Shown: positions 22,761 through 64,000 of the stretch, piece after piece
Layout of the letters: each line of letters begins with the position of its first letter
Position numbering within the stretch: the first letter of the stretch is position 1
NCBI RefSeq assembly: GCF_006345805.1
Contig: NC_043019.1
Location: forward strand, 5,269,360-5,333,359
Reading direction: 5' to 3'
DNA length: 64,000 nucleotides
Source: Octopus sinensis
Lineage: Eukaryota
Made by a program: the position numbers and the translations under genes
Notes under the pieces: generated by a model
What the model was told of the DNA's origin: nothing
The model's database searches: none
The model's input: the letters and a program-made list of their open reading frames with translations, nothing else

Positions 22761-22793
<33 letters not shown>

Positions 22794-30478: not shown

Positions 30479-30884
30479 GGATCTTTTCCGTTTGAACGGC
30501 AGTTTTTACCATAATTTCCACGTAACTAAAAAATGTTAAACTTCGTATACTGGTAGAATGTGTTTATAAAACATCTTTTTCTCTTGGCTTTATTGAGAAA
30601 ATTCTATGGTTTGTAAGATATTTGTTGTTTTTTTCTTCAATTTCTGCAATTTCAACCAATCAATGACGTCTATTGAGGTAAAGAACATTCTGTCCCTCGT
30701 TTAAGAAACAGATTGGGTTTATTTACATTTGTGAAGAGAAAAAAGATACCTTCCCCCCACCCCTAACCATAACCATAACCCTAAAACAGATTGAAATGCA
30801 ATAGATCGATACTAGGGTCATAATTATGGGTGACAATTTCAATTGACACTGCTAGAAAAAACTGCCGTTCAAACCGAAAGATCC
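30479..30884. mobile_element. GGATC MITE, TSD ATTTTTAA
   Basis: TIRs plus exact TSD; in PHAX intron 2. Confidence 0.9.
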
Positions 30885-32347
30885 ATTTTTAAATACCAAA
30901 TACACTATCAAGGTGTGAGTGTGTATGTGGATAAGATGTTCATTTTGTAACCATGCTGTTCTGGGTTTGATTCTACTGCATAGCACTCTGGTTAAGGGTT
31001 TTCTATCAGAGCCTAGCCACAGGTTAACCACTGTGAGTTGGAACTGGTAAGTAAAAACTAGATAAGACACAGGGTGAGCGTGTATAGATGAATGCTGTGT
31101 CCCTGCATTCATAAAAAGTGCACATTTTTTATTTGTAGTTGCATACCAATGGGGAAAAGCCAAAACATGATGCTTGTGAAATAAGTTCCCTTTGATATTC
31201 ATTCTGTGTTGAGTAACAGAGACACTCCTTTGTGGAGGCACATGGCCTAGTGGTTAGAGCAGCGGACTCGCAGTCGAGGGATCGCGGGTTTGAATCTCAG
31301 ACCGGGCGATGTGTGTGTTTATGATCGAAGCACCTATGCTCCAGGCGGTTCCGGCAGAAGGTAATGGCGAAACTTCTGCTGACTCATTCATCACAACTTT
31401 CTCTCACTCTTTCCTCCTGCATCTAGCAGCTCACATGCGACGGACCGGTGTCCCGTCCAGGTGGGGAACCTCTACGCCAAGAAACCCTGGAAACCGGCCC
31501 TTATGAGCCAGGCATGGCTCGTGAAGGAACAAACAACAGACACTCCTTTGTCATTCACATTGTCAGACAAACATGTACCAGCCAGTCATTTGGTCCACTG
31601 AAAACTTGTCATCAATGACATTATTGTTTACCAACAAGGAAATAATTAAATAAATATAAAACACAATAGAAAATATAATAAATGATATTTATGTGAAGTC
31701 TAACCGATGCAGCCTTTAACACTTTAGCATTCAGATTATGTGATGTTTATTTATGCACATTATTTTCAATTACTCAGGCATTATCTTTTTGTGCTGACAT
31801 TTTGATGATGTACTTGTGTATTTTTAGTGTGGCAATGTAGGATAGGTGTGAGAGGCTGAATATGGCCAGTTGGTACATCATCATCATTTAACGTCCGCTT
31901 TCCATGCTAGCATGGGTTGGACGGTTCGACCGGGGTCTGGTAAGCCATGGAGGCCGCACCGGGTTCCAGTCTGATTTGGCAGTGTTTCTACAGCTGGATG
32001 TCCTTCCTAATGCCAACCACTCCGTGAGTGTAGTGGGTGTTTTTTATGTGCCACCGGCACAGGGGCCAGAACAGGCTGGCAAATGGCCATGATCGGTTGG
32101 TGCTTTTACGTGTCACCGACACGGACGCCAGTCAGGTGGCGCTGGCATCTGCCACGTTCGGACGGTGCTTTTTACATGTCACCTGCATGGGTGTCTTAAC
32201 TACAATTTCCATTTGAATTTTTATTTTGATGTTGATGTACTTGACTCAATAGGTCTCCTCAAGAACAGCGGGTCACTCAACAAATATAATATTTGGGCCA
32301 GACATAGCTGATTTAAATGCTAAAGGGTTAAGAAATCAATATCTTAC

Positions 32348-33053
32348 CTATGAGGTACACTTTTGACTCTTCAAGAAAATCAGCAATGGCTTCTGTAACT
32401 TTTTCCTCATCATCATCAACTGTGACATCAAAAGCCTTCCTCTGTGGCGCTCTGTCAGTTGGTTTTGGACCGAGACGTTTTTTGGCACTGCGCCTCCTTT
32501 TCTCGGCTTTTTTATACACTCCATTGAAGTTCTCTTCAAGTTTTTCTAAATCAGGGACACTATCAAACAGGTCATCATTTTTCTTGCTGGGCATCACAGA
32601 ATCAACGCCCGCTTCCGCCGGCCAAGGCCGGGTGTCCTTCAGCGCCTTTTTGTAGCTGTAAGATTCTACCTGCCGATCACTGTAACCCTCTTCTTTGTGC
32701 TCCATGTCAAACCCGTGGAAACCTTGAGACAACATCTGTGATCGTAATACAGAACCCCAAATATTCTTTTTCTTTGGTTTGCTAGCAGTGTTAGAATCTG
32801 TGACACCCTGGCCAAAGGAAAACTGTGCATTGGGTACTTGGAAAGTGGAGTTCGTGTTAATAGAATTGCTGAAACTAAACTCCATAGAACTCTGCTGATC
32901 TTTCGAAGCAATACCATACCGTTTCTTTTTCCAGGTAAACTTTTCATCATCGCTGTCATCTGAACTTGATGATGCAATCTTTGCATCTGATTTGCTGCGA
33001 TAGGATGTGGGGTTCACTGGCTTTCTGTAATTCTGAGAAATGGTCGATGATGC
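32348..33053 (-). CDS. PHAX: PHAX exon 2
   Basis: Acceptor tttcag, donor G|GTAAGA; contains SDSDDE..WKKKR, KKNIWGSVL, RQVESYSY, KRRRSAKKRLG, VTVDDDEEKV, all collinear with PHAX. Confidence 0.95.
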
Positions 33054-33368
33054 CTGAAACAGAAAATGAGCAAATCATTTTTAATAAATAACATTGTGCA
33101 ACAAGATTTTTGTCCTTGGGTAGCAACCGTTATTTCCTATTTGCTTTTGCTCCTATGAAAAATGGTTAATATTTCTTTCAAAATTTACTTTTGTTACATT
33201 TATTCAAGCTCCAAAGAATCCCTCCCAACACATGGCTACGATGCCCCTCCATTTATTCCTGCTCATGATCAGAGATGCATATACTGTCAGGCACCAAAGG
33301 AAATGCTTAACTTGTTAAGACCAAGCAACTGACAAGCAAATCTCTGGTATTCAACAGAATATTTCCTA

Positions 33369-33628
33369 CTAGCAGTATCGCCCGGTGTTGCTCGGGTTTG
33401 TTTCAACCCGCTGGAATTGGAATTTTTGAAAAGTAAAAATTTTGCATTATGTAGCTTGTCATTCTCTTCAAGTGAACATTTTTCTGGTTGAAATCCATGA
33501 CCGAATCGAATCTACTTCGAAAAATCATAGGTAAATTCTAATTGAAGAAATTCTATATTGTAGAATTGTATTAAAAAGAAACATGGTAACAGGCAGAGAA
33601 AATCTGCCTTTTATCATAAGAGATGATA
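33369..33628 (-). mobile_element. Helentron-associated HINE/DINE-1-like element
   Basis: ACTAGCAGTATCGCCCGG.GTTGCTCGGG end; other end TATATATAAAAG plus (TG)n. Confidence 0.55.
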
Positions 33629-34269
33629 ATATTTTCGCTTCAGCAGTTAAGCACTGAATCAGTCTGAAATGTAATGGAAAAGGTCAGTTTTGAAACATTG
33701 ATGTCCAGGTCACAAAAGCAAAGTTTGAAGGAAATAGTAGTAATTTCTTTCGATTTCTAGATAGAAGCAAGTAGAAAATAACACTGACCAAAGACGAAAA
33801 AATAAATAAAATAAACTGGATATACACCCAGTTTGTCAGTCTATCCTATACAATTATCAACAGTAGGTTGGAATATGTATTATACTTCTAACCTACGCAC
33901 AGGCACGTTGGAATAATAATAGATCCGTGGATCACACCTAGGCATGGGTCCACTTTATCAGCTGATTTGGTGGTGGTTGGATACACAATAGAACACTATA
34001 ACTCACACTACAGTTTGAAAATTACATAAAGGAAAATTACCTGCAGGATTTATCTATCTATCTATCTATCTATCTATCTGTGAGTGTGTGTATTACTTGG
34101 TATCGTTGATCGACTTGTTGAAACCAATAAAAGAATTACTGATGGTAGAACAAAGGTTATTGATTGAAATTGGTTTTATTGGGACTTCCAAGATTCGCCT
34201 ATAACGGTTTATCCAAGTAGTCGTATTGAATAAGCCGTTAAGGAGGAAACTCGTAGTCCTGGCCAAATC

Positions 34270-34353
34270 ATCGTGTGTGTGTGTGTATATATATACATAC
34301 ATATGCAGCCACGTGTGTGTGTGTATATATATACATACATATGCAGCTACGTG

Positions 34354-34384
<31 letters not shown>

Positions 34385-34392
34385 GCAGCTAC

Positions 34393-34444
<52 letters not shown>

Positions 34445-34500
34445 GCAGCTACGTGTATATATATATATATATATATATACATATGCAGCTACGTGTATAT

Positions 34501-34543
<43 letters not shown>

Positions 34544-34551
34544 GCAGCTAC

Positions 34552-34587
<36 letters not shown>

Positions 34588-34635
34588 GCAGCTACGTGTA
34601 TATATATATATAATATATATATATATATACTATAT
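34270..34635. repeat. CATATGCAGCTACGTG-(TA)n compound minisatellite, about 7 units
   Basis: Direct. Confidence 0.95.
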
Positions 34636-35882
34636 ATGTTCTGCATAACTGGCATTAGAATTTTTCTTTTGCCCTTATTTTGTAAATTATTTATGAATTT
34701 AACCTTTAAAGCTATTTTTTGATATGCTGGCCATTGATAAAATTTTTTCCCGAAAAAAATTTTATCCTACATTAGTCATATATATATATATATATACTTT
34801 ATAATTAGGGTTCAGCAAAGAATTGCTTTACCACATACCGAAGTTTAGAAATAGCAGTCAAAAAACCTTAGCTATTTCTTCTACTTTAAAAAGGGACTCA
34901 CAGAAAAACCAAAATTTTGAAATATACATTTTCAGACGTTTATATATATATATATATATATGACTTCTGCAAATGTATATTTCAAAATTTATACCTTCGT
35001 TAGATCGAACCAAGCTTCACAGGGAAGTGAGACGTTCATGCCTTTTTTTTTCTTCTAAATAAATGAAGGATTATACAAACGCAAACACACATGCAAGGTA
35101 TAACAGTAGTGTAACTGTGGGAATGCAAACATGATGATAGACACGAACAAAAATATCAATTAACACAAATAAAACATTTATTACTCAGAGATGCAATTAA
35201 GCCTTATAACTTTTGACCAAAGATTAACAACCTGCTAAAAGTTTTTAAAATTATTATTTTTATAATAATAATCATTTTGTTTAAATCAGAAATTGGCAAG
35301 ACTGGGAAGTTTACAATTGTTTTTTATTTCTTAAACGTGTGTCTACCTGACGAATATTGAATAATGAAACTACTTTTGTTTTCGTCTGCAGTGAAGTGTG
35401 GACATTAATTGTGCAAGTGTTCGTACATTTTCAACCATAATTAACTGAGACATCATTTAAAAATATTCTGGAAACGAAACAGTTTAATATCAATTAATCA
35501 TCGAAGACTGATGAAAATGGAATTGATATAACAAAATAAAATAATGAAGTTCGAGGTTGTTTGTTAACAATATATGTCGATATAGTTGTAAAATGAAAAG
35601 AATTATTGTCTTATATGAATTTTACAGACATTAATGAATAATAGGAAGACTGTAAATTGGATAATTTCTCATTTAAAATAATTTTATAGCTTCATAAACA
35701 TAGTTTTGGTGGGGAATTAATTTCCCCAGTTAAACTACCATTATGCCCTAACATAATCACGCACCACTTCAATAGGAGGAATTGTTCACGTTAAAAATTT
35801 ACAGAAAATATGCAATAATAATGACAACCGTAATAATTTGTAAAGACACTGATATAAGAAGAGTGTTATAAACCCTGATTAC

Positions 35883-35957
35883 CTGGATCTTTGAAGAAGC
35901 TTCATGATCAGAATCGGAGTCTAACAATTCACCGTCTTCCAGTTCCAATGCCGCCAT
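35883..35957 (-). CDS. PHAX: PHAX exon 1 (MAALELEDGELLDSDSDHEASSKIQ)
   Basis: ATG 35957, donor CAG|GTAATC; matches PHAX N-terminal MEDGQLSDSDSD motif. Confidence 0.92.
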
Positions 35958-37552
35958 CACAAATTCAGTTTCGCGGCAGAAACCACTTCCGCTGCCGAGG
36001 CCACGATTTGAAACCGTTTCGTCTGAATCACTCCACCAATTGGATTCTCTTCTTAGTTTTATGTCATCCACATTTTTTGTTAACTTAGCCCGCTATGCTA
36101 AACCACATTCCTAATTAATTAAGCCTACGAATCCCATTAAAACGTTCGCAAAGAAGCCAGAAACCACGGGGAAGAGACCTTTGATGAAATCACCCCCCTC
36201 CAAGGCCTTCACTGATTCTTTTATTTTATCAACGGAAAGTTGAACGAGCAACGTTGACTTCGCTGGGATTTGAATTCAAAGCCTAAAGCCCACGAGGCAT
36301 TTCCTTCGACTACCTAACGATTCGGTTAATTTACCGACTTAGATTTAAACATTAATTAATAACGGAGGTAGGGAGAAGACCACACAATTTGGATGAAGAA
36401 GGGTGTTGCTAATTAAATTGCTGCTTGTACTTATCTTATGGACCCCGGAAGTATGCAAGGGAGAAAATCGACAGAAATTAAACGGGAATTTGATGGGCCG
36501 TAGTTTTAAATTCTTCAGGTTCCGATGATCGAATAATTCTCTGCCAAACCATTGCCCTTCCTCGGTCCTTCTTAATTGTTGATTCTGATTTAGGGAAGTA
36601 GGGTTAGTCGATTACATCGGCCCTAATACCTGATTGGTACTTTATTTTACGGAACCTGGAGAGATGAAAGGCAAAGTTGATCTCGGAAGAAATACTGTAA
36701 AGCATTTCTTCCCAACCTTTCGCCCTCGTCTGGTGCTAAAAATAAGAATTTCTTACATTGGTACCAAGTCACACATTAGCATATCCGTGAGTATACTGGG
36801 CTCATAGAATAACTAAATGATGCTTATTTTATTGACTTCTAGGTATGATACTGGAAATAAGCGAAGTCTAATTAAACTGTAGAGCGATAGAATGAAAATA
36901 CTACAAAACATATTTCAGCTTTTGTCCATTTTCTGCGAATATTTGTTTTAATCCCTCGGATTAGAGCTAATTATTTGTAACAGAATTTTCCAATAGGTCA
37001 ATCAGTCTGATTGACTTACGAAAGCGAATGGAGAGTTACTCAAATGACACTAAGTATGTTAGGAACGTAAAATAATTGCTTAGGGGGACCAAAGAAACAT
37101 ACCTACAGACATCATCATCATCGTTTAGCGTCCGCTTTCCATGCTAGCATGGGTTAGACGGTTCAACTGGGGTCTGGGAAGCCAGAAGGCTGTACCAGGT
37201 ACAATCTAAGATCTGGCAATGTTTCTACGGCTGGATGCCCTTCCTAACGCCAACCACTCCATGAGTGTAGTGGGTGCTTTTTACGTGCCATCGACACGGA
37301 GGGCAGGCGAGGCTGGCAACGGCCACGATCGGATGGTGCTTTTTACATGCCACCGGCACGGAGGCCAGTCGGGGCGGCGCTGGCAAAGGCCACGTTCGGA
37401 TGATTCTCTTATGTACCACCGGCACTGGATCACTGCTACAATTTCCATTGATGTTGATCGATTTTGATTTTGATATATATAAATACATATAAAATCGTTA
37501 GCCCAAACCAGTTAGCTGATCCCCTTTTTCATAGCACTTGAGAAAGCTTATC

Positions 37553-39220: not shown

Positions 39221-39847
39221 AACCACATAGTAATGGGTATGATCTCACTGTGTGGTACCATTTACCATTGTCTTGGGTTAATGACTAATTTCTGAGAAGA
39301 TAGAGACTATTAAAAAAAACCCATCATACCGCCCTCCTCCCGTCCTCTCTAATCTACAACAGCTCTCTGTTCTGAAGATAGACCCCCCACAACTGGCCCT
39401 TAATGACACTGAAAATGCCCTGTTAAGATAGACAGAGCAGGTGTTTATTTTCTATCTTTCACTATTTACTTGTTTCAGTCATTAGACTGTGGCCATGCTG
39501 GGGCTCTGCCTTGAAGAATTTTTGGCTGAATGAATTGACCCTGGTACTTATATTTTTTTAAAACTGGATACCTTTTCTATCAGCCTTTTTGTTGAATTGC
39601 TAAGTTATGGGGAGATAAATTCATGAATACTGGCTGCCAAGTGGGGTGGGGTCCAAACACAGACAAAAAAACATACACACACATATATATATATGATGGG
39701 CTTTCAGTTTCTGTCTACCAAATCTACTCACAAGGCTTTGATTGGGTTGGGGCTGTTGTAGAAGACACTTGCCCAAGGTGCCATGCGGTAGGACTGAACC
39801 CGGCACCATGTGCTTGGGAAGCATGCTTCTTATCACATAACCATGTC

Positions 39848-40250
39848 TCTCTTTACTCTTTTACTTGTTTCAGTCATTTGACTGCGGCCATGCTGGAGCA
39901 CCGCCTTTAATCGAGCAACTCGACCCCGGGACTTATTCTTTTGTAAGCCCTGTACTTATTCTATCGGTCTCTTTTGCTGAACCGCTAAGTAACGGAGACA
40001 TAAACACACCAGCATCGGTTGTCAAGCAATGCTAGGGGGACAAACACAAACACACACACGCATATATATATATATATACATATATATGACGGGCTTCTTT
40101 CAGTTTCCGTCTACCAAATCCACTCACAAGGCATTGGTCGGCCCGAGGCTATAGTAGAAGACACTTGCCCAAGGTGCCATGCAGTGGGACTGAATCCGGA
40201 ACCATGTGGTTGGTAAACAAGCTACTTACCACACAGCCACTCCTGCGCCT
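39848..40250 (-). mobile_element. SINE family A
   Basis: Same structure; older copy adjacent at about 39460-39840. Confidence 0.85.
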
Positions 40251-43994: not shown

Positions 43995-44388
43995 TTCTCT
44001 TTTACTTGTTTCAGTCATTTGACTGTAGCCATGCTTGAGCACTGCCTTTAGTCAAGCAAATTGACCCCCAGGACTCATTCTTTGGAAGCCTAGTACTTAT
44101 TCCATCAGTCTCTTTTGCTGAACTGCTAAGTTACGGGGATGTAAACACACAGCATTGGTTGTCAAGCGATGTTGGGGGGACTAACACAGACACACAAACA
44201 TATATATATATATATACACATATGATGGGCTTCTTTCAGTTTCCGTCTACCAAATCCACTCACATGGCTTTGGTTGGCCCGAGGATATAGTAGAAGACAC
44301 TTGCCCAAGGTGCCACGCAGTGGGAATGAACTCAGAACTATGTGGTTGGTAAGCAAGTTACTTACCACACAGCCACTCCTGTGCCTAT
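43995..44388 (-). mobile_element. SINE family A
   Basis: Same structure. Confidence 0.85.
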
Positions 44389-45439
44389 TAAGAATATTAA
44401 AAACAAATAATGAACTTCTGCTGTGCCAATCTTGCTTTTGATCATAAAATGATAAGTCAGAAGAAAACTAAGGTCATGTTTAAGGAAACATGAATTTGTA
44501 ATTAAATACATGGGAAGCACTCCGTCGGTTACGACGATAAGGGTTCCGGTTGATCCGAATCAACGGAACAGCTTGCTCGTGAAATTAACATGTAAGTGGC
44601 TGAGCACTCCACAGACACGTGTACCCTTAACGTAGTTCTGGGGGATATTCAGCGTGACAAGACCGGCCCTTTGAAATACAGGTACAACAGAAACAGGAAG
44701 TAAGAGTGAGAGAAAGTTGTGATGAAAGAGTACAGCAGGGATCACCACCATCCCCTGCCGGAGCCTCGTGGAGCTTTAGGTGTTTTCGCTCAATAAACAC
44801 TCACAACGCCCGGTCTGGGAATCGAAACCGCGAGTCCGCCGCCCTAACCATTGCGCCTCCATAATTAAATACAGTTATCCTAGAGACCAGACAGAGGATC
44901 TTGTAGATCTTTTAATCTACGTTCCTCTACTTGCTTACCAATTCCATTGGTGCGCACCTGGCAGAACCTTTCAACTGTGATGCCAGCACAGGGATTGCCC
45001 TGCACACTAAGTATGAAGAGTACGCATTATCCTAAGACCTGGTATGGTTGATATCCAGCTTCGTCAATCTCATGTGGCAGATGTTCAGCCAAGTTATAGT
45101 TTGGTGTGGTTTCGACGGTGGCGAGCTGGCAGAAATGTTAGCACACCAGGCGAAATGCTTAGCAGTATTTTGTCTGTCGCTACGTTCTGAGTTCGACTTT
45201 GCCTTTCATCCCAGTTACGCACTGGGGTCGATGTAATCGACTTAATCCGTTTGTCCCCTCTGTGTGTAGCCCCTTGCGGGCAGTAAAGAAATAGGTTAAT
45301 GTCCAACCACAAGGAAAACCTGGGGGTGGTGGTGGGGTAGAGTTGGTCCCTGTATTTGTAACAGAGTGAAATCCAAATATTATGCTTGAATAAATTAAGA
45401 TGGGATGGTCACAGCAGGATCACAGTTTGGCTTGACAAC

Positions 45440-46134: not shown

Positions 46135-46710
46135 ATTTCTTTATTGCTCACAAGGGGCTAAACAAGGACAGACAAAGGGATTAAGTCGATTACATCGACC
46201 CCAGTGCGTAACTGGTACTTAATTTATTGACCCCGAAAGGATGAAAGGCAAAGTTGACCATGGCAGAATTTGAACTCAGAACGTACGGCAGACGAAATAC
46301 CTATTTCTTTACTACCCACAAGGGGCTAAACATAGAGGGGACAAACAAACGGATTAAGTCGATTACATCAACCCCAGTGCGTAACTGGTACTCAATTTAT
46401 CGACCCCGAAAGGATGAAAGGCAAAGTTGACCTTGTTGGAATTTGAACTCAGAACACAAAGACAGACGAAATACCTATTTCTTTACTACCTACAAGGGGC
46501 TAAACACAGAGGGGACAAACAAGGACAGACAAACGCATTAAGTCGATTATATCGACCCCAGTGCGTAACTGGTACTTATTTAATCGACCCCGAAAAGATG
46601 AAAGGCAAAGTCGACCTAGGCGGAATTCGAACTCAGAACGTAGCGGAAGACGAAATATGGCTAAGCATTTCGCCCGGCGCCCTAACCACTCTGCCAGCTC
46701 GCCACCTTAG
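46135..46710 (-). mobile_element. Family-B SINE, head plus three bodies
   Basis: Same junction on the minus strand. Confidence 0.8.
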
Positions 46711-46997
46711 ATAATAACAATAATCCTTTCTGTTATAAGTACAAGGCCTGAAATTTGTGGGGAGGGGACTAGTCGGTTACATCGACCCCAGTGTATAACT
46801 GGCACTTAATTTATTGACCCTGAAAAGATAAAAAGGCAAAGTCAACCTTGGTGAGATTTGAACTCAGAATGTAAAGACGGACGAAATGCAGCCAAGCATT
46901 TTGCCTGGCGTGCTAACGATTCTGCCAGCGTTGTCGCTTTGGCAACAAATAAATGCAAACTCAACACCAGGATAAATACAAAAAAGAAATAAAAAAA

Positions 46998-47012: not shown

Positions 47013-47231
47013 CTATTTATAAACACAAGAATAATATTCGTCTTCAAGTTCGTAAAGTTCAGTGGCCATGTCGTCTCGTAAGGTTAGTAGCTTTGTGTCC
47101 AGTTCACTCTGTTTCTGTTTGTATAGTTTTGTGTTCTGACCGATGACGTCGTTCACCGATGGGAAATCGTTCAAGATGAGGAACTGCTTGAGGTCTGATA
47201 CGAGCTTCATGAGGGATTCTCCAGCACGAAC
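47013..47231 (-). CDS. MED22: MED22 terminal exon ([27 protein letters not shown]...YYSCVYK*)
   Basis: Near-identical to the MED22 core motif; acceptor ggacag; total 142 aa. Confidence 0.97.
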
Positions 47232-48356: not shown

Positions 48357-48737
48357 CTAGCAGTATCGCCCGGCGTTGCTCAGGTTCGTAAGGGAAATAA
48401 CTATAAAGCATTTTTAGAGAGTTATAGCCAAAAAATAGAAAAAAAATGGAAAAAAAATGATGGTAAATTTTTTTTGAGAGTTAAAAAGGTGGAGTTGCGT
48501 CCCCTAGACGGTTTGTGGTTTGGGTTTCTGATTCTCAACCCCATGTCGAATTTATCGATTTTTTTCAGAACTGGGGGAACTTTTCAAAATTTTCGCTGCG
48601 TTAGTTTTGAATTATGACATTGGGCTATGTGTGTGTCAAGTTTCATCAGAATCGGTTGAAAGCCGTGGTCAGAGTGAGGGTACAACCTAACAGACACACA
48701 GAAACACGCACAGACAAACTGCCGTTTATATAGAGAG

Positions 48738-48740
<3 letters not shown>
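48357..48740 (-). mobile_element. HINE/DINE-1-like element
   Basis: Same termini; partial relatives at about 20040-20320 and 56565-56870. Confidence 0.55.
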
Positions 48741-48772
<32 letters not shown>

Positions 48773-49115
48773 TATATATATACATACACACCACACACAC
48801 ATATATATATATACATATACACACACACACATATATATATCATACACACACACATATATACATACACACACACACACCATATATATATACATACACACAC
48901 ACACACCATATATATATATATACATATACACACACACATATATATATCATACACACACACATATATACATACACACACACACACACATATATATATACAT
49001 ATACACACACACACACACACACATATATATATCATACACACACACATATATACATACACACACATATATATGTACACACACACACACACATATATATGTA
49101 CACACATACACATAC
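48735..49115. repeat. Compound (TA)/(CA) microsatellite
   Basis: Direct. Confidence 0.98.
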
Positions 49116-50641
49116 ATGACAGGTTTCTTTCAGTGTATGTCTACAGATCCCCTCACAAGGCTTTGGTTTGCCCGAGGCTAATGAGAAGCAAACTCCTGAC
49201 CAAACAGCCACAAGTGTGTTTATATTTGTATGTGTGTGTATATGGAAATATATTTATCACTCAAGAGTGTGTATATGCATGCATGTCTATCTAGGAATAC
49301 ATCATCAAATATAAGTATAGGTATGTATGCAACATCAGCTGAATGGTTAAGAACTTCTCTTCACAATCACAAGGTCCTTGGTTCAATTCCAGTGTATGGC
49401 ACCTTGGGCAAGGGCCATTTATTTTGTCGACAGGCTGACCCCAAGCCTTGTCTATGAAACTGGATAGATACAAACTGTGTAGAATCTCAATGGTTAGATT
49501 ATACCTGTAATACAGTCGCATCATCTTAATGAAATTCTCAATCTGAATTCTGATTCAGGTTGTGGATTTCATTAAGGGTACATGTGTCCCTTATATGCTA
49601 ATTCAATGACTGGCTTCTGTGCCGGTGGCACATAAAAAGCACCAACCAATCGTGGCCGGTGCCAGCCTCCCCTGGCACGTAAAAAGCACCCACTACACTC
49701 ATGGAGTGGTTGGCGTTAGGAAGGGCATCCAGCTGTAGAAACACTGCCAGATCAGACTGGAGCCTAGTCCAGCCTCCTGGCTTCCCAGACCCCGGTCGAA
49801 CCGTCCAACCCATGCTAGCATGGAAAGCGGACATTAAACGATGATGATGATGATGATAGTGCAGTTGATTAAACAATTAATATGTATTGTCTAAATTGAC
49901 AGTGATCTTATTGTCTTTACATTATGAAATATTGGAGTTGTTTAGCCCAAGGACAGCTTCGACCAAGATTATCTCCCTTTCATTTAGACCAGTAGTCTTC
50001 AACTGGGGTCATATGGACTTTGGGGGTTTCACAAAAGATTTTGTTGTTAAAATTTCTGTGCACTGAAATCCGTTATACTTCTACCATACACAAAATATTT
50101 TAACAGTTTTTTAAAATACAATTCTTAATAATCATCATCGTTTAACGTCCGCTTTCCATGCTAGCATGGGTTGGACGGTTCAACTGGGGTCTGGGAAGCC
50201 TGAAGGCAGCACCAGGCCAGTCAGATCTGGCAGTGTTTCTACAGCTGGATGCCCTTCCTAACGCCAACCACTCCATGAGTGTAGTGGGTGCTTTTTATGT
50301 GCCACCGACACAGGTGCCAGACGAGGCTCGCGAACGGCCATGTTTGGATGGTGCTTTTTAAGTGCCACCGACATAGGTGCCAGACGAGGCTGGCGAATGG
50401 CCACACTCGGATGGTGTTTTTTATGTGCCACCGACACAGGTGCCAGACGAGGCTGGCTATTAATATTTAATTATAAAGATATAATAGGGTTATTTTAAAC
50501 ATTGGATGGCTATGAGGGTCCACCTGAGGTAAAACAGGAACTAAAGGGGTCCATAGGAAAAATGGTGTAACTAAGATTGACTTGAGAGAGAGAGAGAGAG
50601 AGAGAAAGAAAGAGAAGCAATGCTTCTTCAGTACAACTTAC

Positions 50642-50722
50642 AATATTTGAAGCGCGGACTTGCATCTCATATTGATCTTGTTCTGCTTGAGTCATCCTTG
50701 AGATTTGTGTATCGTCTTCCAC
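50642..50722 (-). CDS. MED22: MED22 coding exon 2 (VEDDTQISRMTQAEQDQYEMQVRASNI)
   Basis: 81 nt, phase 0/0, acceptor gactcag, donor ATT|GTAAGT; matches IEDETQVSRATQGEQDNYEMHVRAANI. Confidence 0.96.
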
Positions 50723-50873
50723 CTGAGTCACACAAAAAAAAAAACATTCGTTACAAGACATAAGGACATTTTTCCCAAAAGTATTTTTCATTTCCCTATC
50801 ACAATCATTGAAAGACAATTAACCAAATTCATTTGTTCTTTATCTGAAAATGCAAACCTATGATCAACAACAT

Positions 50874-51271
50874 AGGCGCAGGAGTGGCTGTGTGGTAAGT
50901 AGCTTGTTTACCAACCACATGGTTCCGGGTTCAGTCCCACTGCATGGCACCTTGGGCAAGTGGCTTCTACTATAGCCTCGGGCCGACCAAAGCCTTGTGA
51001 GTGGATTTGGTAGACGGAAACTGAAAGAAGCCCATCATGTATATATGTATATATATATGCGTGTGTGTTTGTGTGTCTGTGTTTGTCCCCTTAGCATTGC
51101 TTGACAACCGATGCTGGTATGTTTATGTCCCCGTTACTTAGCGGTTCGGCAAAAGAGACCGATAGAATAAGTACTGGGCTTACAAAAGAATAAGTCCCGG
51201 GGTCGAGTTGCTCAATTAAAGGCGGTGCTCCAGCATGGCCGCAGTCAACTGACTGAAACAAGTAAAAGAGT
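50874..51271 (+). mobile_element. SINE family A
   Basis: Same structure. Confidence 0.85.
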
Positions 51272-51729
51272 AACACTCCAGCCATGAACATCCTGTCTTT
51301 TGGTTGTCATGTTGTTAATCAGGTCTTATTTAGAACCATGCCATCCAGCCTGTCCCGTTTTAACCCTATGGCATTTAAACCAGCCATATCAGGCCAAAAT
51401 ATTCTACCTGTTTTATGTTAAAAATTGCCAGATCCAGCCTCTCACACCTCCTCTACAATGTTATCCAAAATCTCCAAAATCTCAAAACTATGAAATAATG
51501 CAGGATTAATTCAAAACAATGTGAACAAATAATAAGCATTACATTTGACAGAATAATCTGAATACTAAAGGGTTAAAGGTTGTGTATAGAGTGAGTTGAA
51601 GGAGATTTGGCAGCTATTTCTAGCATGTCAGGCAACTTTAGCTACTCTGCGACTTTGATACCCTATGGGTTGGGGTAACTAAAAGGCTGTGACCTTCATC
51701 TCTTTCTGTGCAGCATGAATACAAAATTG

Positions 51730-53450: not shown

Positions 53451-54316
53451 TCCATGGAATCCATGGCTTGCTAGCTCCTGTCAAACTGTCCAATCCACAC
53501 CAGCATGGAAGACAGATGTTAAATATTGATGATGATGATGATGGCATGTTTTCCACACAACTTCTGTCCATCAAATTCAACTCACAACAAGTCACTGGTC
53601 AGCCCAATAATTCAATAGTCTATATGCACAGACAGACAGACATCCACACCTGTTCAAAACATTTCAGGTGTAAAATGTAGTCATTAATTTCAGCAAATTA
53701 AGTCACCAATAAAAATTAACATGCTTCGTTAGTCACCAATTAGTAGGGACCAGAACCAATGATGACAGTGGACAGTAGAGTTAGTTAGGTAGTGGACAGA
53801 GGAGTCAGTTTTATCTGACCAGTAGACTTTGTGGCTTGTGTTAGACCATTAAACTGTAACACTATTTCTGTCCTTGGGTAGCAACTGTTATTCCCTATTT
53901 GCTGACCCCTAGAAACTATGAAAAACGGCTAATGTTTCCTTCAGATTTTGCTTTTGTTACTTTTATTCAAATCCCAAAGAATCCCCTTCAACAAATGGCT
54001 ATGATACTCCCCCACTACTCCTGCTCATGATCAGAAATGCATGTTCCACTAAGGGACATACTCAAGTGGTTAAGGTCAAGCAATTGACATGCAAATCTGT
54101 GGTATTGAACAGAATATTTGCTGTAATGATATCTCTGCTTTGGCAATTCAGTGCTGAATCTGTTGGAAATGTGATGGAAATCAGGTGAATTTCAAAACAT
54201 TGATGTCCAGGTGACAAAAGCAAAGTCTGAAGGGAATAGTTGTCGTTTCCTTTGATTTACAGAATAGAAGCAGAGGAAAGAACATTTCCTGACAAAAAAA
54301 AAAAAAAAAAATGTTA

Positions 54317-54718
54317 CAGGCGCAGGAGTGGCTGTGTGGTAAGTAGCTTGCTTACCAACCACATGGTTCCGGGTTCAGTCCCACTGCGTGGCACCTTGGG
54401 CAAGTGTCATCTACTATAGCCTCATACTGACCAAAGCCTTGTGGGTGGATTTGGTAGATGGAAACTGAAAGAAGCCCGTCGTATATATGTATATGTATAT
54501 ATATATGTATGTGTATGTGTTTGTCCCATCCAACATCACTTGTCAACCGATGCTGGTGTGCTTACGTCCCCGTAACTTAGCGGTTCGGCAAAAGAGACCG
54601 ATAGAATAAGTACTAGGCTTACAAAGAATAAGCCCCGGGGTCGATTTGCTCGACTAAAAGGTGGTGCTCCAGCATGGCCACAGTCAACTGACTGAAACAA
54701 GTAAAAGAGTAAAAAGAG
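54317..54718 (+). mobile_element. SINE family A
   Basis: Same structure. Confidence 0.85.
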
Positions 54719-54854: not shown

Positions 54855-55623
54855 GCAGCAAGCTGGCAGAATCGTTAGCACGCCAGGCGAAATGCTTAGT
54901 GGTATTTTGTCTGCTGCTACGTTCTGAGTTCAAATTCTGCCGAGGTCGACTTTGCCTTTCATCCTTTCGGGGTCGATTAAATAAGTACCAGTTATGCACT
55001 GGGGTCGATGTAATCGACTTAGTGTCTTTCTCTGTCCTTGTTCGTCCCCTCTGTGTTTAGCCCCTTGTAGGTAGTAAAGAATTAGGTATTTTGTCTGCTG
55101 CTACATTCTGAGTTCAAATTCCGCCGAGGTCGATTTTGCCTTTCATCCTTTCGGGGTCGATTAAATAAGTACCAGTTACGCACTGGGGTCGATGTAATCG
55201 ACTTAGTCTCTTTCTCTGTCCTTGTTTGTCCCCTCTGTGTTTAGCCCCTTGTAGGTAGTAAAGAATTAGGTATTTTGTCTGCTGCTATATTCTGAGTTCA
55301 AATTCCGCCGAGGTCGATTTTGCCTTTCATCCTTTCGAGGTCGATTAAATAAGTACCAGTTACGCACTGGGGTCGATGTAATCGACTTAGTCTCTTTCTC
55401 TGTCCTTGTTTGTCCCCTCTGTGTTTAGCCCCTTGTAGGTAGTAAAGAAATAGGTATTTTGTCTGCTGCTACATTCTGAGTTCAACTTTGCCTTTCATCC
55501 TTTCGGGGTCGATCAAATAAGTACCAGTTACGCACTGGGGGTCGTAGTAATCAACTTAGTCCCTTTCTCTGTCCTTGTTTGTTCCCCCTATGTTTAGCCC
55601 CTTGTGGGCAATAAAGAAATAAG
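54855..55623 (+). mobile_element. Family-B SINE, head plus four bodies (184-bp period)
   Basis: Units start at 54901, 55085, 55269 and 55453. Confidence 0.9.
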
Positions 55624-57074
55624 TATTAGTCCCATCAATCTTAGACAAGACACTGGGCCAAGACAGTATCAAAAATACTACACCCCATACTAACCCACCC
55701 AATCCCTTGCTTAAAACTACCAGCACCTCCCTAACAACCCACCCTGCACCTATGAAAAAGGTAAACCAAGTGATAAGAAAGCCTTAATCTTTTAGCCTTT
55801 AAACTGGCCATATCCAGCCCAAATATTCTGTTTTATGTTCAAACCAGCCAGGGATCAGGCCTCTCACACCTACCCTATAATGTTATTCTAAAATTATACA
55901 ATTACGTTATTGAAATGTCAAAGCTGAAAGTTAATGCATGATTAATTCAAAACAGTGTGAATAAATAAGCATGACATGTAACACAATAACCTGAATGCAA
56001 AGGGTTAAGCATGCGACTTACAACCCAGACACCCACCCATCTCTGTCCCTCATCATCATTGGTGGTTCAACAACACTAACAGATGGACTAAATAAACAAC
56101 CCCCCCCCCCCACAACAAAAACGAAAGTGAAACTACAACAACAACAACAACAAAAGCTATGTAGATATTTAATGATGGCTTGTAAAATAATTTCACAAAC
56201 GAGAATACAAATAAATAAATACATCCTACATTGTACTGGGTGGAGGGGTTAATCTTTTTAATTGTAGTTAGGGATATGTCAGTTTAAAGGAAGCACATGG
56301 CTTAGTGGTAAAGGTGTTGGACTCATGATTGTAAAATTGGGGTTTCAATTCCTGGACCGGGTGATACATTGTGTTCTTGAGCAAAACACTTCATTTCATG
56401 TTACTCCAGTCCACTCAGCTGAAAAAATTAGTCACCCTGCGATGGACTGGTGTCCCGTCTAGGAAGGAATATATATGTCACAGAAACTGGGGCCCTATGC
56501 TCCTTGTGGACTAAGCAGCCAACTCCCTCCCCACTGGTCTAAAGGAGTTGATACCCTGCAGAGTTATCTCTCTATATATAAACGGCAAAATGTCTGTGTG
56601 TGTGTCCTTTATACAAATCCACAATTTTTCAGTTAGAGGGCTTGCACTTTCTATGGTCATTCAAAACCGTCCAAGGGTGGTCGTGCACATCTTTACATTT
56701 CCCCAGTCACCCACAAAGCCATTAAAAAATCTATAGAAGTGACTTTTTTATGAATTTTCTATCCAAAACCCAATCAAAATGCCTGAAACTTGATACGCCA
56801 ATTGAATGCCAGCTAGCTGTATGTGATTGGTCGGAGATTTGGACAGTACTCACGTGTATGTGCATGCACTAGCACTATGACCTGGCGTACTGCAGTACTT
56901 GTTGGTTATAAAACATTGCCACAACACCTACTTGGTAGTGAGTTGCACCATCATAAACCACAAGGTACCTACTTAGAGGAAGGTGGACTGTGCCTCCCCA
57001 TGGTTCATAATCATACACTTTAGGTGAGGTAACAAGAGAATCTCTTTGTTGTCACTTGCTCTGCTAAAAATAGC

Positions 57075-59208: not shown

Positions 59209-59337
59209 CCGAGCTAGTTTGATAATCTCTCGAAAGTTATCAACCATCGATTTCACGTCATCTTTCAGGCGTTTGTTGTAGGATCTGAGCAGAGCTTCTT
59301 TGCTTTGGGGTAGAACTCTTTGAGGGTGTCCCGACAT
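59209..59337 (-). CDS. MED22: MED22 coding exon 1 ([43 protein letters not shown])
   Basis: Matches MED22/SURF5 [17 protein letters not shown]; donor CGG|GTTTGT; upstream acceptor ctctcag at 59369 implies a 5'UTR intron; missed by ORF track. Confidence 0.95.
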
Positions 59338-59632
59338 AATTATACGTTCATGTGGTGATTAAGATAATCTGAGAGAAGAGGAAAATAATAAAAAAAGAAA
59401 CAATAAATGAAATATCTGAGACGAGTTGTAAAAAAATATTATAATTTATCAAGAGCATTCTTCTTTTGTTCTTCTTACAGCATTCACCCGGGGTGGGTTG
59501 AGCTGGCTTCATTCATCCTCAATGCTGCATCTCTCACAAACGCCGACCAGGCCTGGCAATTTGAGGCTAACGACCACGTGATCTCCAACCATTCCTTATT
59601 CCAGCGACGAACGCAGTAGATATGGGAGCCTA

Positions 59633-60150
59633 GGTTGGGTTCCAGATCAGCCTTGACTGTCATCAGTCAGGTTTTTCGTTGTCCACCACATCGCTTTCGC
59701 CAACCCTGAAGGGGAGCTGGGGCAATTGCTTCGTGGGTTGGGTTCAAGATCAGCCTTGACCGTCATCAGCCAGGTTTTTCGTTGTCCACCACATCGCTTT
59801 CGCCAACCCTGAAGGGGAGCTGGGGCAATTGCTTCGTGGGTTGGGTTCCAGATCAGCCTCGACTGTCATCAGCCAGGTTTTTCGTTGTCCACCACATCGC
59901 TTTTGCCAGCCCTGAAGGGGAGCTGGGGTAATTGCTTCGTAGATGCATTCTCCTGGCTGACGACGGAGGGCATGACCCAGCCAACGCAGGTGTCTCGTTA
60001 GGATGACTTGTCGGAGGGAGGTGATTCTGCACTGGTGTCGCACCGAATTGTTGGAGACAAAGTGATGCCATCGGACACGAAGGATGCGGCGTAGACAGAG
60101 GTGATCAAAGGATTCTAGTTGCTTAATATCTTCCACCCTCATTGGCTTTT
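59633..60150 (-). mobile_element. RTE-like LINE fragment with a 103-bp internal unit x3 (59633-59941)
   Basis: LESFDH.CLRRILRV.W...RHLRWLGH.LRR...GGQRKTW. Confidence 0.85.
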
Positions 60151-60734
60151 GGAATGTCAGATCCCTGATGCATGAAGAAACACAGGCACTAATGATGCAC
60201 ACTCTATCCAAATATCAAGAGCATTTTAGATTAATGAAAGAAATGAGAAATAAGGAAAGCTTTTAACAAAGCAGAAATTTTTAAAAACCTTTATGGGTGC
60301 AAAGGCTTATGATCCAAAGGGTAGCTGCTGCTACTAACACCAGCACTGGACTACCTGAAATGGCAGTATCTATATAAATACATATTGAGGTGGTGAGCTG
60401 GCAGAAACGTTAGCACGATGGGCGAAATGCGTAGCCGTATTTCGTCTGCCATTACGTTCTGAGTTCAAATTCCGCCGAGGTCGACTTTGCCTTTCATCCT
60501 TTTGGGGTCGATAAATTAAGTACCAGTTATGCACTGGGGTCGATGTAATCGACTTAATCCGTCTGTCTGTCCTTGTTTGTCCCCTCTGTGTTTAGCCCCT
60601 TGTGGGTAGTAAAGAAATAAGTATCTATATAAATACATATTTCTTTGACTGTAGTCTTCTGAAGATAGGTCTTTGTACCTGAAATATTAAGTTTTTTAAA
60701 AAAACTTTCTGCATTGTTAGAAGCTAACCTTACT

Positions 60735-60965
60735 GTCAAGGTATTGGTTGCTCTCCAACAGGTTTGTGATTGAGTCTGTGGCGGTGGAGATCTCTGGCAT
60801 TCTTGGCCCCTGGACCATATCCCTGCTCACTGCTATCAAGGCAGAGATGGCTGTCTGCAAGTGCAAGCCCAGTGAGTCAGAGTGCCTGTTCCACTGCATC
60901 TCCCTTGCCGTCCTGTGGGGCAACACCTTTTCCAGCTTGTCTGCTGGGGCCATAAGAAGGGTTTC
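60735..60965 (+). pseudogene. RLE-class non-LTR retrotransposon C-terminal remnant
   Basis: F....VE..G.LGP....L......LF..ISLAV.WGN pattern, resembling QR.S.A.QRGN. Confidence 0.55.
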
Positions 60966-61119
60966 TTAATAAAGATATATAAACAAGAAAAAATAAATAA
61001 ATAAAAAAAAAGATTAAGAATTTCTCATTTCATTCATTATTCTGCTACTCTTATAATTTACTTTTTAATTATTAATCTCATCTTATGACATAAATCAACA
61101 TCATCATTTGCTGAATGTG

Positions 61120-61450
61120 CATGGCTCAGTGATTAGAGCGTCGAGCTTATGATCATGAGGTTGTGAGTTCGATTCTCGGATCGGGCTGCATGTTGTGTTC
61201 TTGAGCAAGACACTTTATTTCATGTTGCTCCAGTTCACTCAGCTGTAGAAATGAATTGTGACATCACTAGTGCCAAGCTGTATCGGCCCCTTTCCCTTTC
61301 CTTTGGATAACATTGGTGGCGTGGAGAGGAGAGGCTGGTATGCATGGGCGACTGCTGGCCTTCCACCAACAATCTTGCTCGGACTTGTGCCTGGGAGGGT
61401 AACTTTCTAGGTGCAATTCGATGGTCATTCATGACCGAAGGGGTCTCCAT
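61120..61450 (+). mobile_element. tRNA-head SINE family E (GCATGGCTCAGTG.TTAGAGC...CTTGAGCAAGACACTT)
   Basis: Relatives at about 1095-1340 (-) and 56290-56480 (+). Confidence 0.7.
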
Positions 61451-62050
61451 GTCCTGCTTAGGAAATTCACAGTACTCAGGTTGTCAAAACAATGAACATA
61501 TGGAGGGAACAAATCACTTCAGTAATAAATCACTTAAACTGATATTTTTACTTCTTATTTTAATGGTATTAAAGTTCAAAAACAGAAAAATATAACCGAG
61601 GGGGGTGTAGTCCTATTTCACACTTAGGGGGTTTATTCCTAGGAGGGTTTTGTCTGGATCCCAGTTTAGCCCAGTATGATTATATTCACTGGAGGTAATA
61701 ATTTGTTGGCAACGCCAGGTCTGCCCTGATATGTAATTTTTCGTTTCCAGGGACGCAACAAAATAAAAGTGTTTACCTTGTCAAAAGTGGAGCTGAAAGT
61801 GTTTTCTTTTGCAAAAATGTAAAAACTGTTTTCCTAGAAAATGAAATTATATTAATTCTTTAGCATTCCAGATTATTTATTCTTGGTTTGTTGAATTAAT
61901 CTTGCATTACCTCATAACTTCGAGATTTGAATGATGCGATTCTTTATTTTTAGAATGAGATTGTCGGACAGGTGTGAGAGGCTGAATCTAGTCACTTTGA
62001 ACATAAAACATAGAAATTTGGGCCTGATATTACCTGTTCAAATGCTAAAA

Positions 62051-62475
62051 CAGTGATTCCCAACTTGGGACATATACCCCACCGATGAAGCCTGATGCCA
62101 TAGTCGCCAGGCACAGAGTTCTCATTAAAGGGATTCACTTTTTTATATATATGGGGTGGTGGTGGTGTTAGGGTTTGTGTTAGAGTTAGGGGTGGGAGAA
62201 AAGGGTTTCTGTTATCTTCAGAAATGTAAACAAAGCCACTTCAGGTACTTACGGTACCTAAACCGAAGGATAGCCCTTTTTTTTTATATTAGTCACTAGA
62301 GTACATTTTTTTTGGACTCAGCACTTAGAAGAATTATCGGTAGATTCTCTAGTATTTAAATAATTGTGATAAAGTATTTAAAATAAAGTGTTTTTTTCCA
62401 ACCACTGGTAGGGCATACGTTTTTATGGACCGTTGTAAAGGGGTCTGGGGTGGTGGAATAGGTTGGGAAACACTG
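62051..62475. mobile_element. Old hAT/Charlie-like MITE (CAGTGATTCCCAAC...GTTGGGAAACACTG)
   Basis: 14-bp TIR with one mismatch; TSD degenerate. Confidence 0.45.
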
Positions 62476-63133
62476 TGCGAAGGAGTGTCCGTCAACTTAA
62501 GCCGAGATTATTAAAAACATCTTTTTCATCAAAATTATGGCCTACATCTTCGCGTACAATTAGTCTCATATTCAATGGAGTTTGAGGCATTATGTATTTC
62601 CTAAAGATGGAACTGAAGAATTATGGACAGTTTAGATCCTTTTATCACTTGGACTTAAATAAATAATAATGTGCATTTTTCAACCAAGGAAAACAAGTTC
62701 ATTTTTGACAATGGGACCTTGGACCGGACCATGTCCAACGATCTAGTATACTTGTGATTAAAAGCGTTCCGACCGCGATCATCCCGGCTTTCTTAAATTT
62801 AGGAGTATAATATCCAAACACGTTCCCTCTTTTTTAAACGGTCAGCGGTGGTGCCCCAGCATGGCCGCAGCGGCCTTCGGGCTAAAACATTTTTAAGGAT
62901 TTAAGGATTGTTGAATGTAATTTGGCTGCTATTTCTGCAGTCTTCTTGATGGATCGCTAATCTGATTGGTTAAATGCTTCATCAGAACCAATTTTGACAA
63001 CCCAGGCATTATACAATCGACAGAGTGGTCACGGATTTTGGTTTCTAAGCTGAAGAACACGAATGGAATTTATAGAGAGAGGGGGGATGAATTACTGATG
63101 GATATATGCATATTATAAACACAGAATACTTAC

Positions 63134-63230
63134 AAATAGTGACCACCCTCGAGGAAAGTTCAGGTCTTGTAAGGAAAACCCGGTTTGGAAAGGTTTTAAT
63201 GGGGTTCAAAATATTTTTGTTGTTGACACT
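63134..63230 (-). other. MED22: Probable non-coding first exon of MED22
   Basis: TTT|GTAAGT donor at 63133 in unique, locally CpG-containing sequence; coding exon 1 needs an upstream exon; 5' boundary uncertain. Confidence 0.5.
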
Positions 63231-63421
63231 TCCGGCGGAAATGAGGATGTAGTTAGTTTCGATGTAATTAGTGATAAAATAATATTTTTAATAGGAAATT
63301 AAGATTATATTTTGTGATCAAATTTCTAATATCTAAAATAAATTCCATTCATATTATATGCAATAATATTAATAATATAATAGGGCTGTTTGTAAAAATT
63401 ACATACACGATATTCCTGATA

Positions 63422-63452
<31 letters not shown>

Positions 63453-63640
63453 CAAATTTAGATTTATTTACATTAAATAATATCATGCAATAATAAAAAA
63501 AGTTATTATTTATTTTGTTTCTTTCTTTTAACATAATCTCTGTCTTGGAGTAAATTTGTGAATACGGAAATGTGGCTTCAGAATAATCTAGAAACCTAGC
63601 TCTGTTTAATTCGGCCACCTATCGGCCTTTTTATCTTAGG
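63134..63640. promoter_or_regulatory. Putative bidirectional promoter with ETS site (CCGGAAGTG, 63227-63235) and TCT initiator (63626-63632)
   Basis: Motifs read directly; divergent first-exon donors at 63133 (-) and 63651 (+). Confidence 0.55.
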
Positions 63641-63650
63641 ACTCATCATG
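63627..63650 (+). CDS. First exon (5'TOP + ATG only) of a probable ribosomal protein gene; RPL7A is a candidate
   Basis: cCTTTTTATCTT TCT/TOP motif, then ACTCATCATG|GTAAGT; only the start codon (63648-63650) is coding in the window. Confidence 0.6.
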
Positions 63651-64000
63651 GTAAGTCCTCGTCTCATTCGATTGTATTTTCTAATCGCTAAACATCGATA
63701 TTTATTTCAACTTTAGATCAAGCATAAGATATGTATTTTGTATCTTGTAAGAGTCTAGTACATATATGAAGAGAAATTTTGTAAAAATATTGTATAATTT
63801 TGTGAATTTAATTGCAAAAGAAATGTGGTAAGCTGTGCTTTTTCCTTCATCGATTTTACAATTTCTCTTTTTTCTCACTTTTTAAAAAAATTTTAAGGTG
63901 GAATTTAGTAATTATTGGATTAATTTTAATTATTGCAAAAAAAAAACGTTATTTGTGTGTCTTTATATAATGTGTATATATGTATGTATAACATATATGT

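Follow-up and report, generated by a model that had tools for sequence, protein, structure and literature searches.

Is the divergent pairing of MED22 and RPL7A, known from the Surfeit locus of vertebrates, also found in a mollusc, and what might have kept the two genes together? The question is raised by positions 63134-63656 of a 64,000-nucleotide stretch of Octopus sinensis DNA (contig NC_043019.1; here referred to as the window), where an earlier note, made from the letters of the sequence, had placed MED22 on the minus strand head-to-head with a plus-strand TCT/5' terminal oligopyrimidine (5'TOP) gene and had proposed that the latter might be RPL7A. We report that the minus-strand gene is MED22 and that the plus-strand gene is RPL7A/eL8, and that 63134-63656 very probably represents the 5' intergenic region common to the two. 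The gene identities, their orientation, the spacing of their coding starts, the splice sites and the spread of the pair across taxa were read directly from the genomes. Octopods have thereby kept the core that the vertebrate Surfeit locus inherited from the bilaterian ancestor, with other genes now around it.

Over 27 kb the window matches CM016881.1 of the O. sinensis assembly GCA_006345805.1 (locus L001) with 100% identity. L001 reaches 5.3 kb past the window, and coordinates were converted using L001 position = 69338 minus window position. The loci used for comparison are numbered in the same way: L003 (Octopus bimaculoides), L006 (Lingula), L008 (Lineus), L009 (Glandiceps) and L014 (Argonauta hians).

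Identity of the two divergent genes

The plus-strand gene is annotated as divergent from MED22, and its products of 265 amino acids in O. sinensis and 257 amino acids in O. vulgaris both match PF01248 (Ribosomal_L7Ae). The annotated coding sequence starts at L001 5690, i.e. at window position 63648, which is exactly the ATG pointed out in the earlier note. Exon 2 lies beyond the window at L001 2105-1986 (67233-67352 if the window numbering is extended), with a ctcctgcag acceptor before it, a GTGAGT donor after it and a reading frame in phase with the ATG. A K-rich start on exon 2 had been predicted for the case that the gene is RPL7A, and the translation bore this out: it gives a K-rich, eL8-specific N-terminus (40 residues) with 77% identity to residues 17-46 of human RPL7A. 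For O. sinensis, exons 1 and 2 of the gene were read directly. The Argonauta hians orthologue (P0266), retrieved with a chimeric query consisting of the octopus N-terminus and a lophotrochozoan consensus, is identical to the exon 2 peptide at 39 of 41 residues, and aligns over its full length to the eL8/L7a chains of solved ribosomes with E-values down to 4e-166. A homologue search with the 41-amino-acid exon 2 peptide alone returned only short metagenome fragments.

PF01248 by itself cannot separate the L7Ae-fold families, and the gene might on this basis have been NHP2, SNU13, RPL30 or RPS12, or a processed RPL7A pseudogene. The product length of 265 amino acids speaks against this, as do the eL8-specific K-rich N-terminus of exon 2 together with its 18-residue motif, the end-to-end match of the Argonauta orthologue to ribosomal eL8 structures, and the introns, which sit where the RPL7A introns of other animals sit (exon boundaries are shared among the orthologues, as judged by tblastn of the neighbour loci). 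Another L7Ae-fold gene or a processed pseudogene, whose probability we regard as practically nil, was ruled out by length, N-terminus and introns.

The MED22 exons were located by tblastn using a human MED22 sequence as query. Three minus-strand coding exons with clean splice sites were found: exon 2 at 59209..59368 (31 nt of 5' untranslated region (UTR), ATG at 59337-59335, codons 1-43), exon 3 at 50642..50722 (27 codons) and the coding part of exon 4 at 47013..47231, where the stop codon TAG at 47015-47013 agrees with the range annotated for the gene in L001 (10001-22325). The individual exons are 64-74% identical to human MED22. The spliced product of 142 amino acids is 99% identical to isoform X2 of O. 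bimaculoides and 97% identical to the 146-amino-acid protein of O. vulgaris; homologues at E<=1e-10 number 945, and the Med22 domain PF06179 was present in all 120 of those listed. The annotated isoforms of 142 and 146 amino acids are explained by two alternative minus-strand donors with which exon 2 can end, separated by 12 nt (59209, GTTTGT, and 59197, GTGTGT); the longer isoform inserts CRIV, which is not present in MED22 of other phyla. The 5' UTR part of exon 2 also carries a three-codon upstream open reading frame (ATG AAC GTA TAA) at 59351-59340 on the minus strand, which is kept in O. bimaculoides (ATGAACATATAA) and not in Argonauta.

Predicted first exons and the interval between them

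The first exon of RPL7A is predicted at 63627..63650 on the plus strand: a 24-nt leader that would start in a C CTTTTT initiator (63626-63632) and that ends with the ATG (63648-63650). It is directly followed by the donor GTAAGT (63651-63656) of intron 1, which extends about 3.58 kb to exon 2 and of which 63651..64000 lie in the window. The initiator and the 24-nt exon described in the earlier note were both recovered at these positions (CC TTTTT at 63626-63632), and the composite pattern, C-YTTTY and then, at most 40 nt on, ATG directly followed by GTRAGT, has this single occurrence on both strands of the 64 kb. The TCT consensus of ribosomal protein genes is YC(+1)TTTYY, as reportedly described by Parry and co-workers in 2010, and the octopus C63627 followed by TTTTT, with a C before it, fits this consensus. 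The TOP rule, a C followed by at least four pyrimidines, also holds at C63627, with a leader that is short.

A first exon of this kind, with C and a pyrimidine run at its start, a length of about 22-26 nt and a final ATG directly before GT, was observed in five lineages. Exon and upstream flank read cggCCTTTTTATCTTaggactcatcATG before the donor gtaagt in Octopus, cggCCTTTTCTCggccaaccaacATG before gtgggt in Haliotis, cttCCTCTTTCaggctaacaagATG before gtgggt in Lingula, ggTCTCTTTCCaatataaatcaagATG before gtgggt in Lineus and cggCCTTTTTCCggctgcctccaagATG before gtgcgt in Glandiceps, and the same architecture is present in Argonauta. In Haliotis, Lingula, Lineus and Glandiceps the TCT/5'TOP-like motif also lies 22-26 nt 5' of the ATG, the start sites being predicted from sequence. 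The one-codon TOP-type first exon of RPL7A, as read from these genomes, is conserved from hemichordates to molluscs. Mammalian RPL7A has the same design, its first exon in the Surfeit locus ending at the ATG as in octopus.

Upstream of the initiator, the proximal promoter of RPL7A (63562..63625, plus strand) holds blocks common to Octopus and Argonauta to which a promoter function may be ascribed: ATACGGAA (63562-63569), TAGCTCTG and, directly 5' of the initiator, GCCACCTATCGG. By lenient blastn the core promoter (63597-63665) gave a colinear match to Argonauta L014 9950-10019 with 78.6% identity, and ATACGGAA, TAGCTCTG, GCCACCTAWCGGCCTTTTTA and the ATG with its GTAAGT are kept in the Argonauta core promoter alignment. 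A motif resembling the core of a ZNF143/Staf site, ACCCACAATGC, is present 30-45 bp 5' of the RPL7A initiator in Lingula (L006 ~9618-9628) and Glandiceps (L009 ~9639-9649); this SBS/ZNF143-like motif was not found in the RPL7A promoters of octopus, Haliotis or Lineus.

RPL7A would then be transcribed from a TCT/5'TOP initiator to give a first exon of about 24 nt followed by a 3.6-kb intron, and its TOP leader might, by analogy with other ribosomal protein mRNAs, confer growth-dependent translational control. Such control of TOP mRNAs is established in vertebrates and Drosophila.

On the opposite strand, a pyrimidine tract and a CAG acceptor, the latter 31 nt 5' of the MED22 ATG, precede the exon that carries this ATG, and the acceptor is conserved at the same position in Argonauta; therefore, at least one upstream non-coding exon is required. 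Its candidate is 63134..63235 on the minus strand, without any ATG, where the donor GTAAGT at 63133-63128 fixes the 3' end and where the 5' end is placed near an ETS/GABP-type site, CCGGAAGTG, at 63227..63235, the presumed MED22 start region. Both landmarks had been claimed in the earlier note and are present as described: the plus-strand ACTTAC at 63128-63133 is GTAAGT on the minus strand, so that the exon ends at 63134, and the plus-strand CACTTCCGG at 63227-63235 is CCGGAAGTG on the minus strand. The separation of about 500 bp given for donor and TCT motif agrees with the 494 bp found. O. vulgaris, O. bimaculoides and Argonauta all keep the 63133 donor, and no other GTRAGT on the MED22 strand from MED22 exon 2 to the start of RPL7A is common to all octopods examined. 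Specifically, the MED22 strand of this interval in O. sinensis has a single CGGAAGT (63234) and two copies of GTRAGT, at 63133 and at 62252, of which the 62252 site is not conserved; the sole GTRAGT of O. bimaculoides is the orthologue of 63133. O. vulgaris has an identical ETS site. Phylogenetic footprinting within the genus is uninformative, the three Octopus species being too close to one another (their alignment has a mean column identity of 84%, and blastn segments have 82-95%), and Argonauta hians was used as the more useful distance, most of the intergenic interval being unalignable between the two genera. The MED22 strand of the 3.4-kb interval of Argonauta between acceptor and RPL7A has exactly one CGGAAGT (L014 9334), at a place equivalent to that of the octopus site, and one GTRAGT, 26 nt apart, and the flanks of its donor, ...GAGGGGTCGACGATATTT before GTGAGTAT, resemble the octopus exon end, ...GAGGGTGGTCACTATTT before GTAAGTAT.

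From these splice signals, we consider it highly probable that 63134 to about 63235 constitutes MED22 non-coding exon 1 and that 59369..63133 (minus strand) is a 5'-UTR intron of about 3.77 kb, which has repeat insertions and varies in length among octopus species. MED22 would start about 400 bp from RPL7A at a TATA-less promoter near an ETS-type site, and a non-coding exon of about 100 nt would be spliced across the 3.8-kb intron to the ATG exon; usage of this exon, like factor binding at either promoter, is predicted. Short divergent transcripts are common at active promoters in general, and the exon ending at 63134 might instead belong to an RPL7A upstream antisense transcript or a separate non-coding RNA, with MED22 starting elsewhere in the 3.8 kb; exon 1 is predicted from sequence, and O. 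sinensis has the second GTAAGT on the same strand at 62252. We hold this to be improbable: the conserved pyrimidine tract and CAG acceptor demand an upstream MED22 exon, no consensus donor other than 63133 is kept in both O. bimaculoides and Argonauta, the interval holds no other called gene in four annotated octopod genomes, and compact genomes have the MED22 ATG about 400 bp from the RPL7A ATG, which makes a MED22 start beside RPL7A the ancestral condition.

Between the two core promoters lies an AT-rich spacer (63240..63540; about 20% G+C) with poly(A/T) runs and (TA)13 at 63420-63446. With C63627 taken for RPL7A and the ETS site or exon 1 for MED22, the predicted start sites would be about 390-430 bp apart. 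Neither sequence nor length of the spacer is conserved: its length ranges from about 390 to 650 bp among octopods, and the corresponding AT-rich spacer of Argonauta is longer.

Several of these observations weigh against a 5' region shared by MED22 and RPL7A. First, 300-560 bp of unconserved, AT-rich and length-variable DNA separate the core promoters and there is no recognisable shared element, for which reason two independent promoters, instead of one bidirectional promoter, may be present. Second, both start sites and the junction of MED22 exons 1 and 2 are predicted by way of conserved splice sites. Third, the ETS site is degraded to CCGGATATG in O. bimaculoides, and the 9-mer is not significant by count, since the window has a single copy where chance predicts 0.21, and at least one copy arises in 17% of shuffles. 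Fourth, the exon 1 block aligns weakly to Argonauta, the observed score being reached in 9 of 200 shuffles, and lenient blastn, which did find the RPL7A core promoter, gave no Argonauta match for it; the coincidence of a single donor and a single ETS core in Argonauta is a stronger, if sequence-based, argument than the local alignment. Finally, the region lacks a classical CpG island, with a G+C content of 20-40%. The observed/expected ratio of CpG is 0.8-1.3 over 62400-63800 compared with a window median of 0.56; this modest rise, based on few sites, would be compatible with an unmethylated promoter region.

Distribution of the pair and relation to the Surfeit locus

To cover other animals, MED22 proteins were looked up with 10-kb flanks and a divergent L7Ae neighbour of about 265 amino acids was sought; the neighbours found were RPL7A orthologues according to tblastn. 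The coding starts of the divergent pair are 4311 bp apart in O. sinensis, about 4.2 kb in O. vulgaris, about 2.7 kb in O. bimaculoides, if measured to the exon with the true ATG, and 3437 bp in Argonauta, and the survival of the pair through cephalopod genome reshuffling, which the earlier note had envisaged, is seen in four octopods. The survey of other spiralians that it had proposed revealed the pair in Haliotis rufescens (645 bp), Argopecten irradians, both haplotigs of Lingula anatina (417 and 389 bp) and Lineus longissimus (419 bp), and among deuterostomes the hemichordate Glandiceps talaboti has it as well (about 425 bp). In the bivalves Solemya velum and Sinanodonta woodiana, MED22 and RPL7A have adjacent locus tags. 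The pair was not found in Daphnia magna or in two bee genomes, where other genes lie on both sides of MED22, and it is lost in at least some arthropods. This absence fits an older report, reportedly by Armes and Fried in 1996, of dispersed Surfeit homologues in invertebrate models.

As had been suggested, the pairing most likely predates the protostome-deuterostome split, because it is present in spiralians (molluscs, Lingula and Lineus) as well as in a hemichordate. Judged from this distribution, we are confident that the pair descends from the bilaterian ancestor, and the head-to-head unit is possibly older than bilaterians.

The mammalian gene order is SURF6-MED22-RPL7A-SURF1-SURF2-SURF4, and the 5' ends of mammalian MED22 and RPL7A lie in a CpG island about 160 bp apart. 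The mammalian/avian Surfeit locus has the same orthologous genes, MED22 (SURF5) and RPL7A (SURF3), head to head as in octopus, and the octopus promoter region differs from the mammalian one in being AT-rich with predicted start sites about 400 bp apart. In mammals the pair resides within a six-gene cluster (layout in PMC9929512), whereas octopods have the MED22-RPL7A core only. PHAX follows MED22 in octopods where mammals have SURF6. It lies 3' of MED22 on the same strand at about 29600-36000 (minus), as placed by colinearity with O. bimaculoides L003 21111-27193, where a PHAX gene (PF10258) is called, and the order RPL7A-MED22-PHAX was seen in O. bimaculoides and Argonauta. The largest open reading frame of the window (32331-33074, minus strand, 248 amino acids) is inside the PHAX region and had no Pfam match.

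No similarity to SURF1 or SURF4 was detected in the window or in L001, L003 and L014, the 3' flank of O. sinensis RPL7A being outside the search; tblastx with Glandiceps SURF1 gave only a spurious microsatellite match, and the 10 kb that lie 3' of Argonauta RPL7A hold no called gene. SURF6 is not beside octopod MED22, where PHAX is found instead; no sequence search was made for SURF2 or SURF6. The description of the locus as Surfeit-type hence stands for the MED22-RPL7A pair, and not for SURF1, SURF4 and SURF6, which were not found near it in octopods. In Glandiceps, SURF1 is convergent (tail-to-tail) with RPL7A, which is the mammalian arrangement (PMC9929512).

The introns of RPL7A provide a further comparison. 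Human RPL7A is a host gene of SNORD24 and SNORD36. According to Rfam, Haliotis, Lingula and Lineus carry both in introns of this gene, and Glandiceps and Argonauta carry SNORD36; an intronic small nucleolar RNA (snoRNA) was among the features that the earlier note had proposed to look for. Neither SNORD24 nor SNORD36 was found in RPL7A of O. sinensis or O. bimaculoides, where the sequence scanned was intron 1 and part of intron 2. By these sequence matches, the intronic SNORD24/SNORD36 of RPL7A are conserved among relatives of octopus. The Lingula RPL7A introns also gave two SNORD14 matches barely over the threshold (L006 6055-6155 and 6520-6625). Lineus gave a separate cluster of SNORD79, SNORD36 and SNORD14 matches on the opposite strand, 2-4 kb past the 3' end of MED22 (L008 13077-15334), which suggests another snoRNA host gene there.

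Among cephalopods the adjacency has been tabulated before and is therefore not new data: block 14284 in supplementary file 3 of Schmidbaur et al. 2022 (PMC9023564) gives L7Ae-Med22-PHAX-DNMT1 for O. bimaculoides, Callistoctopus minor and Euprymna scolopes. In Euprymna three genes without Pfam domains lie beside L7Ae in this block (PMC9023564), and this entry is our evidence for decapodiforms. Block 14284 has the same adjacency as reported here, covers three cephalopods only and is not discussed as a pair in that study (PMC9023564); the two-gene core is far older than the coleoid block. Since 275 ancient blocks are retained in Euprymna (PMC9023564), survival of the pair through the coleoid reorganisation is not exceptional.

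Retention of the pair and the surrounding sequence

What has held the two genes together? One answer is selection on a shared promoter region by way of coupled regulation, which we regard as a tentative possibility. As a selective unit the locus would span the one-codon TOP exon, the SNORD24/36 host introns and a MED22 start beside RPL7A, ancestrally together with SURF1. The position of the promoter appears to be preserved: the predicted MED22 start site stayed by RPL7A while the coding start moved 3-4 kb, which hints at such a constraint. Any coupling of the two promoters is conjectural, and a neutral alternative is at least as economical.

According to this alternative, which rivals functional coupling and not the gene identities and which we find somewhat more plausible than coupling, though short of probable, the adjacency is a passive relic without shared regulation: a gap of 100-600 bp is a tiny target for breakpoints, and breaks in it would damage two essential genes, so that the pair could survive passively. 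Daphnia and the bees broke the pair and retained both genes, and these arthropod losses support neutral retention. The octopod core promoters lack a common conserved element and are separated by a spacer of about 390 to 650 bp, and the flanking genes vary, being PHAX in cephalopods, kinases in Haliotis and Argopecten and SURF1 in Glandiceps only; the 275 ancient microsyntenic blocks retained in the squid genome (PMC9023564) point the same way. Against a passive relic, ancient pairs are enriched for head-to-head orientation and gaps of less than 1 kb, with co-expression (Irimia et al. 2012, PMC3514665), and the predicted start site of octopus MED22 is still beside RPL7A with the coding start 4.3 kb away.

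The pair resembles other ancient head-to-head pairs such as HSPE1-HSPD1 (PMC3514665) in consisting of two non-paralogous housekeeping genes arranged 5'-5' with a sub-kilobase gap in compact genomes. Unlike HSPE1 and HSPD1, the products of MED22 and RPL7A have no obvious common pathway. The main text of Irimia et al. 2012 (PMC3514665) does not mention MED22-RPL7A.

The sequence around the two genes is rich in repeats. A dispersed repeat of about 400 bp is present in at least nine copies in the window, in both orientations and with 80-94% identity between copies (671-1081, 12875-13262, 14472-14862, 23997-24397, 26242-26620, 39847-40250, 43997-44398, 50860-51273 and 54316-54716); it has the look of a short interspersed element, and further copies occur in O. 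vulgaris MED22 introns and flanks. Two tandem arrays with units of about 170-185 bp (46135-46870 and 54900-55630), mutually related and in opposite orientation, flank the 3' part of MED22 and one MED22 intron, and similar units are present in Argonauta (L014 ~740-990, 3424-3587 and 12282-12400). Long TA/CA-type compound microsatellites at 22330-22940, 34100-34650 and 48650-49290 give open reading frames of 120-190 codons with YIYIYTHTH-like translations. The open reading frames 59753-60214 (minus), in MED22 intron 1, and 9935-10471 (plus) resemble the C-terminal part of retrotransposon proteins without any Pfam match, and the segment around 59753-60214 is missing or rearranged in O. bimaculoides. 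A Pfam scan of the ten longest suitable open reading frames of the window gave nothing useful.

In the open full-text literature, which does not cover the 1990s Surfeit papers and the relevant supplements, we found no description of a MED22-RPL7A pair in animals other than vertebrates, although the pair may well be included in genome-wide sets of microsynteny. The two genes had been annotated before, and no new kind of element or mechanism is revealed. The data support the octopus pair as a further case of the divergent MED22-RPL7A arrangement of the Surfeit locus, a modest evolutionary point of modest novelty. It corrects the impression, built on Drosophila and C. elegans, that Surfeit clustering is restricted to vertebrates: the MED22-RPL7A core is common to deuterostomes and spiralians, and in one hemichordate it is accompanied by SURF1. 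If the pair is indeed a selective unit, the Surfeit cluster would be an ancient unit lost in ecdysozoans and no peculiarity of vertebrates. For cephalopod genomics, the locus would provide a clean and easily assayed ancestral promoter-sharing pair that outlasted the reorganisation of the coleoid genome.

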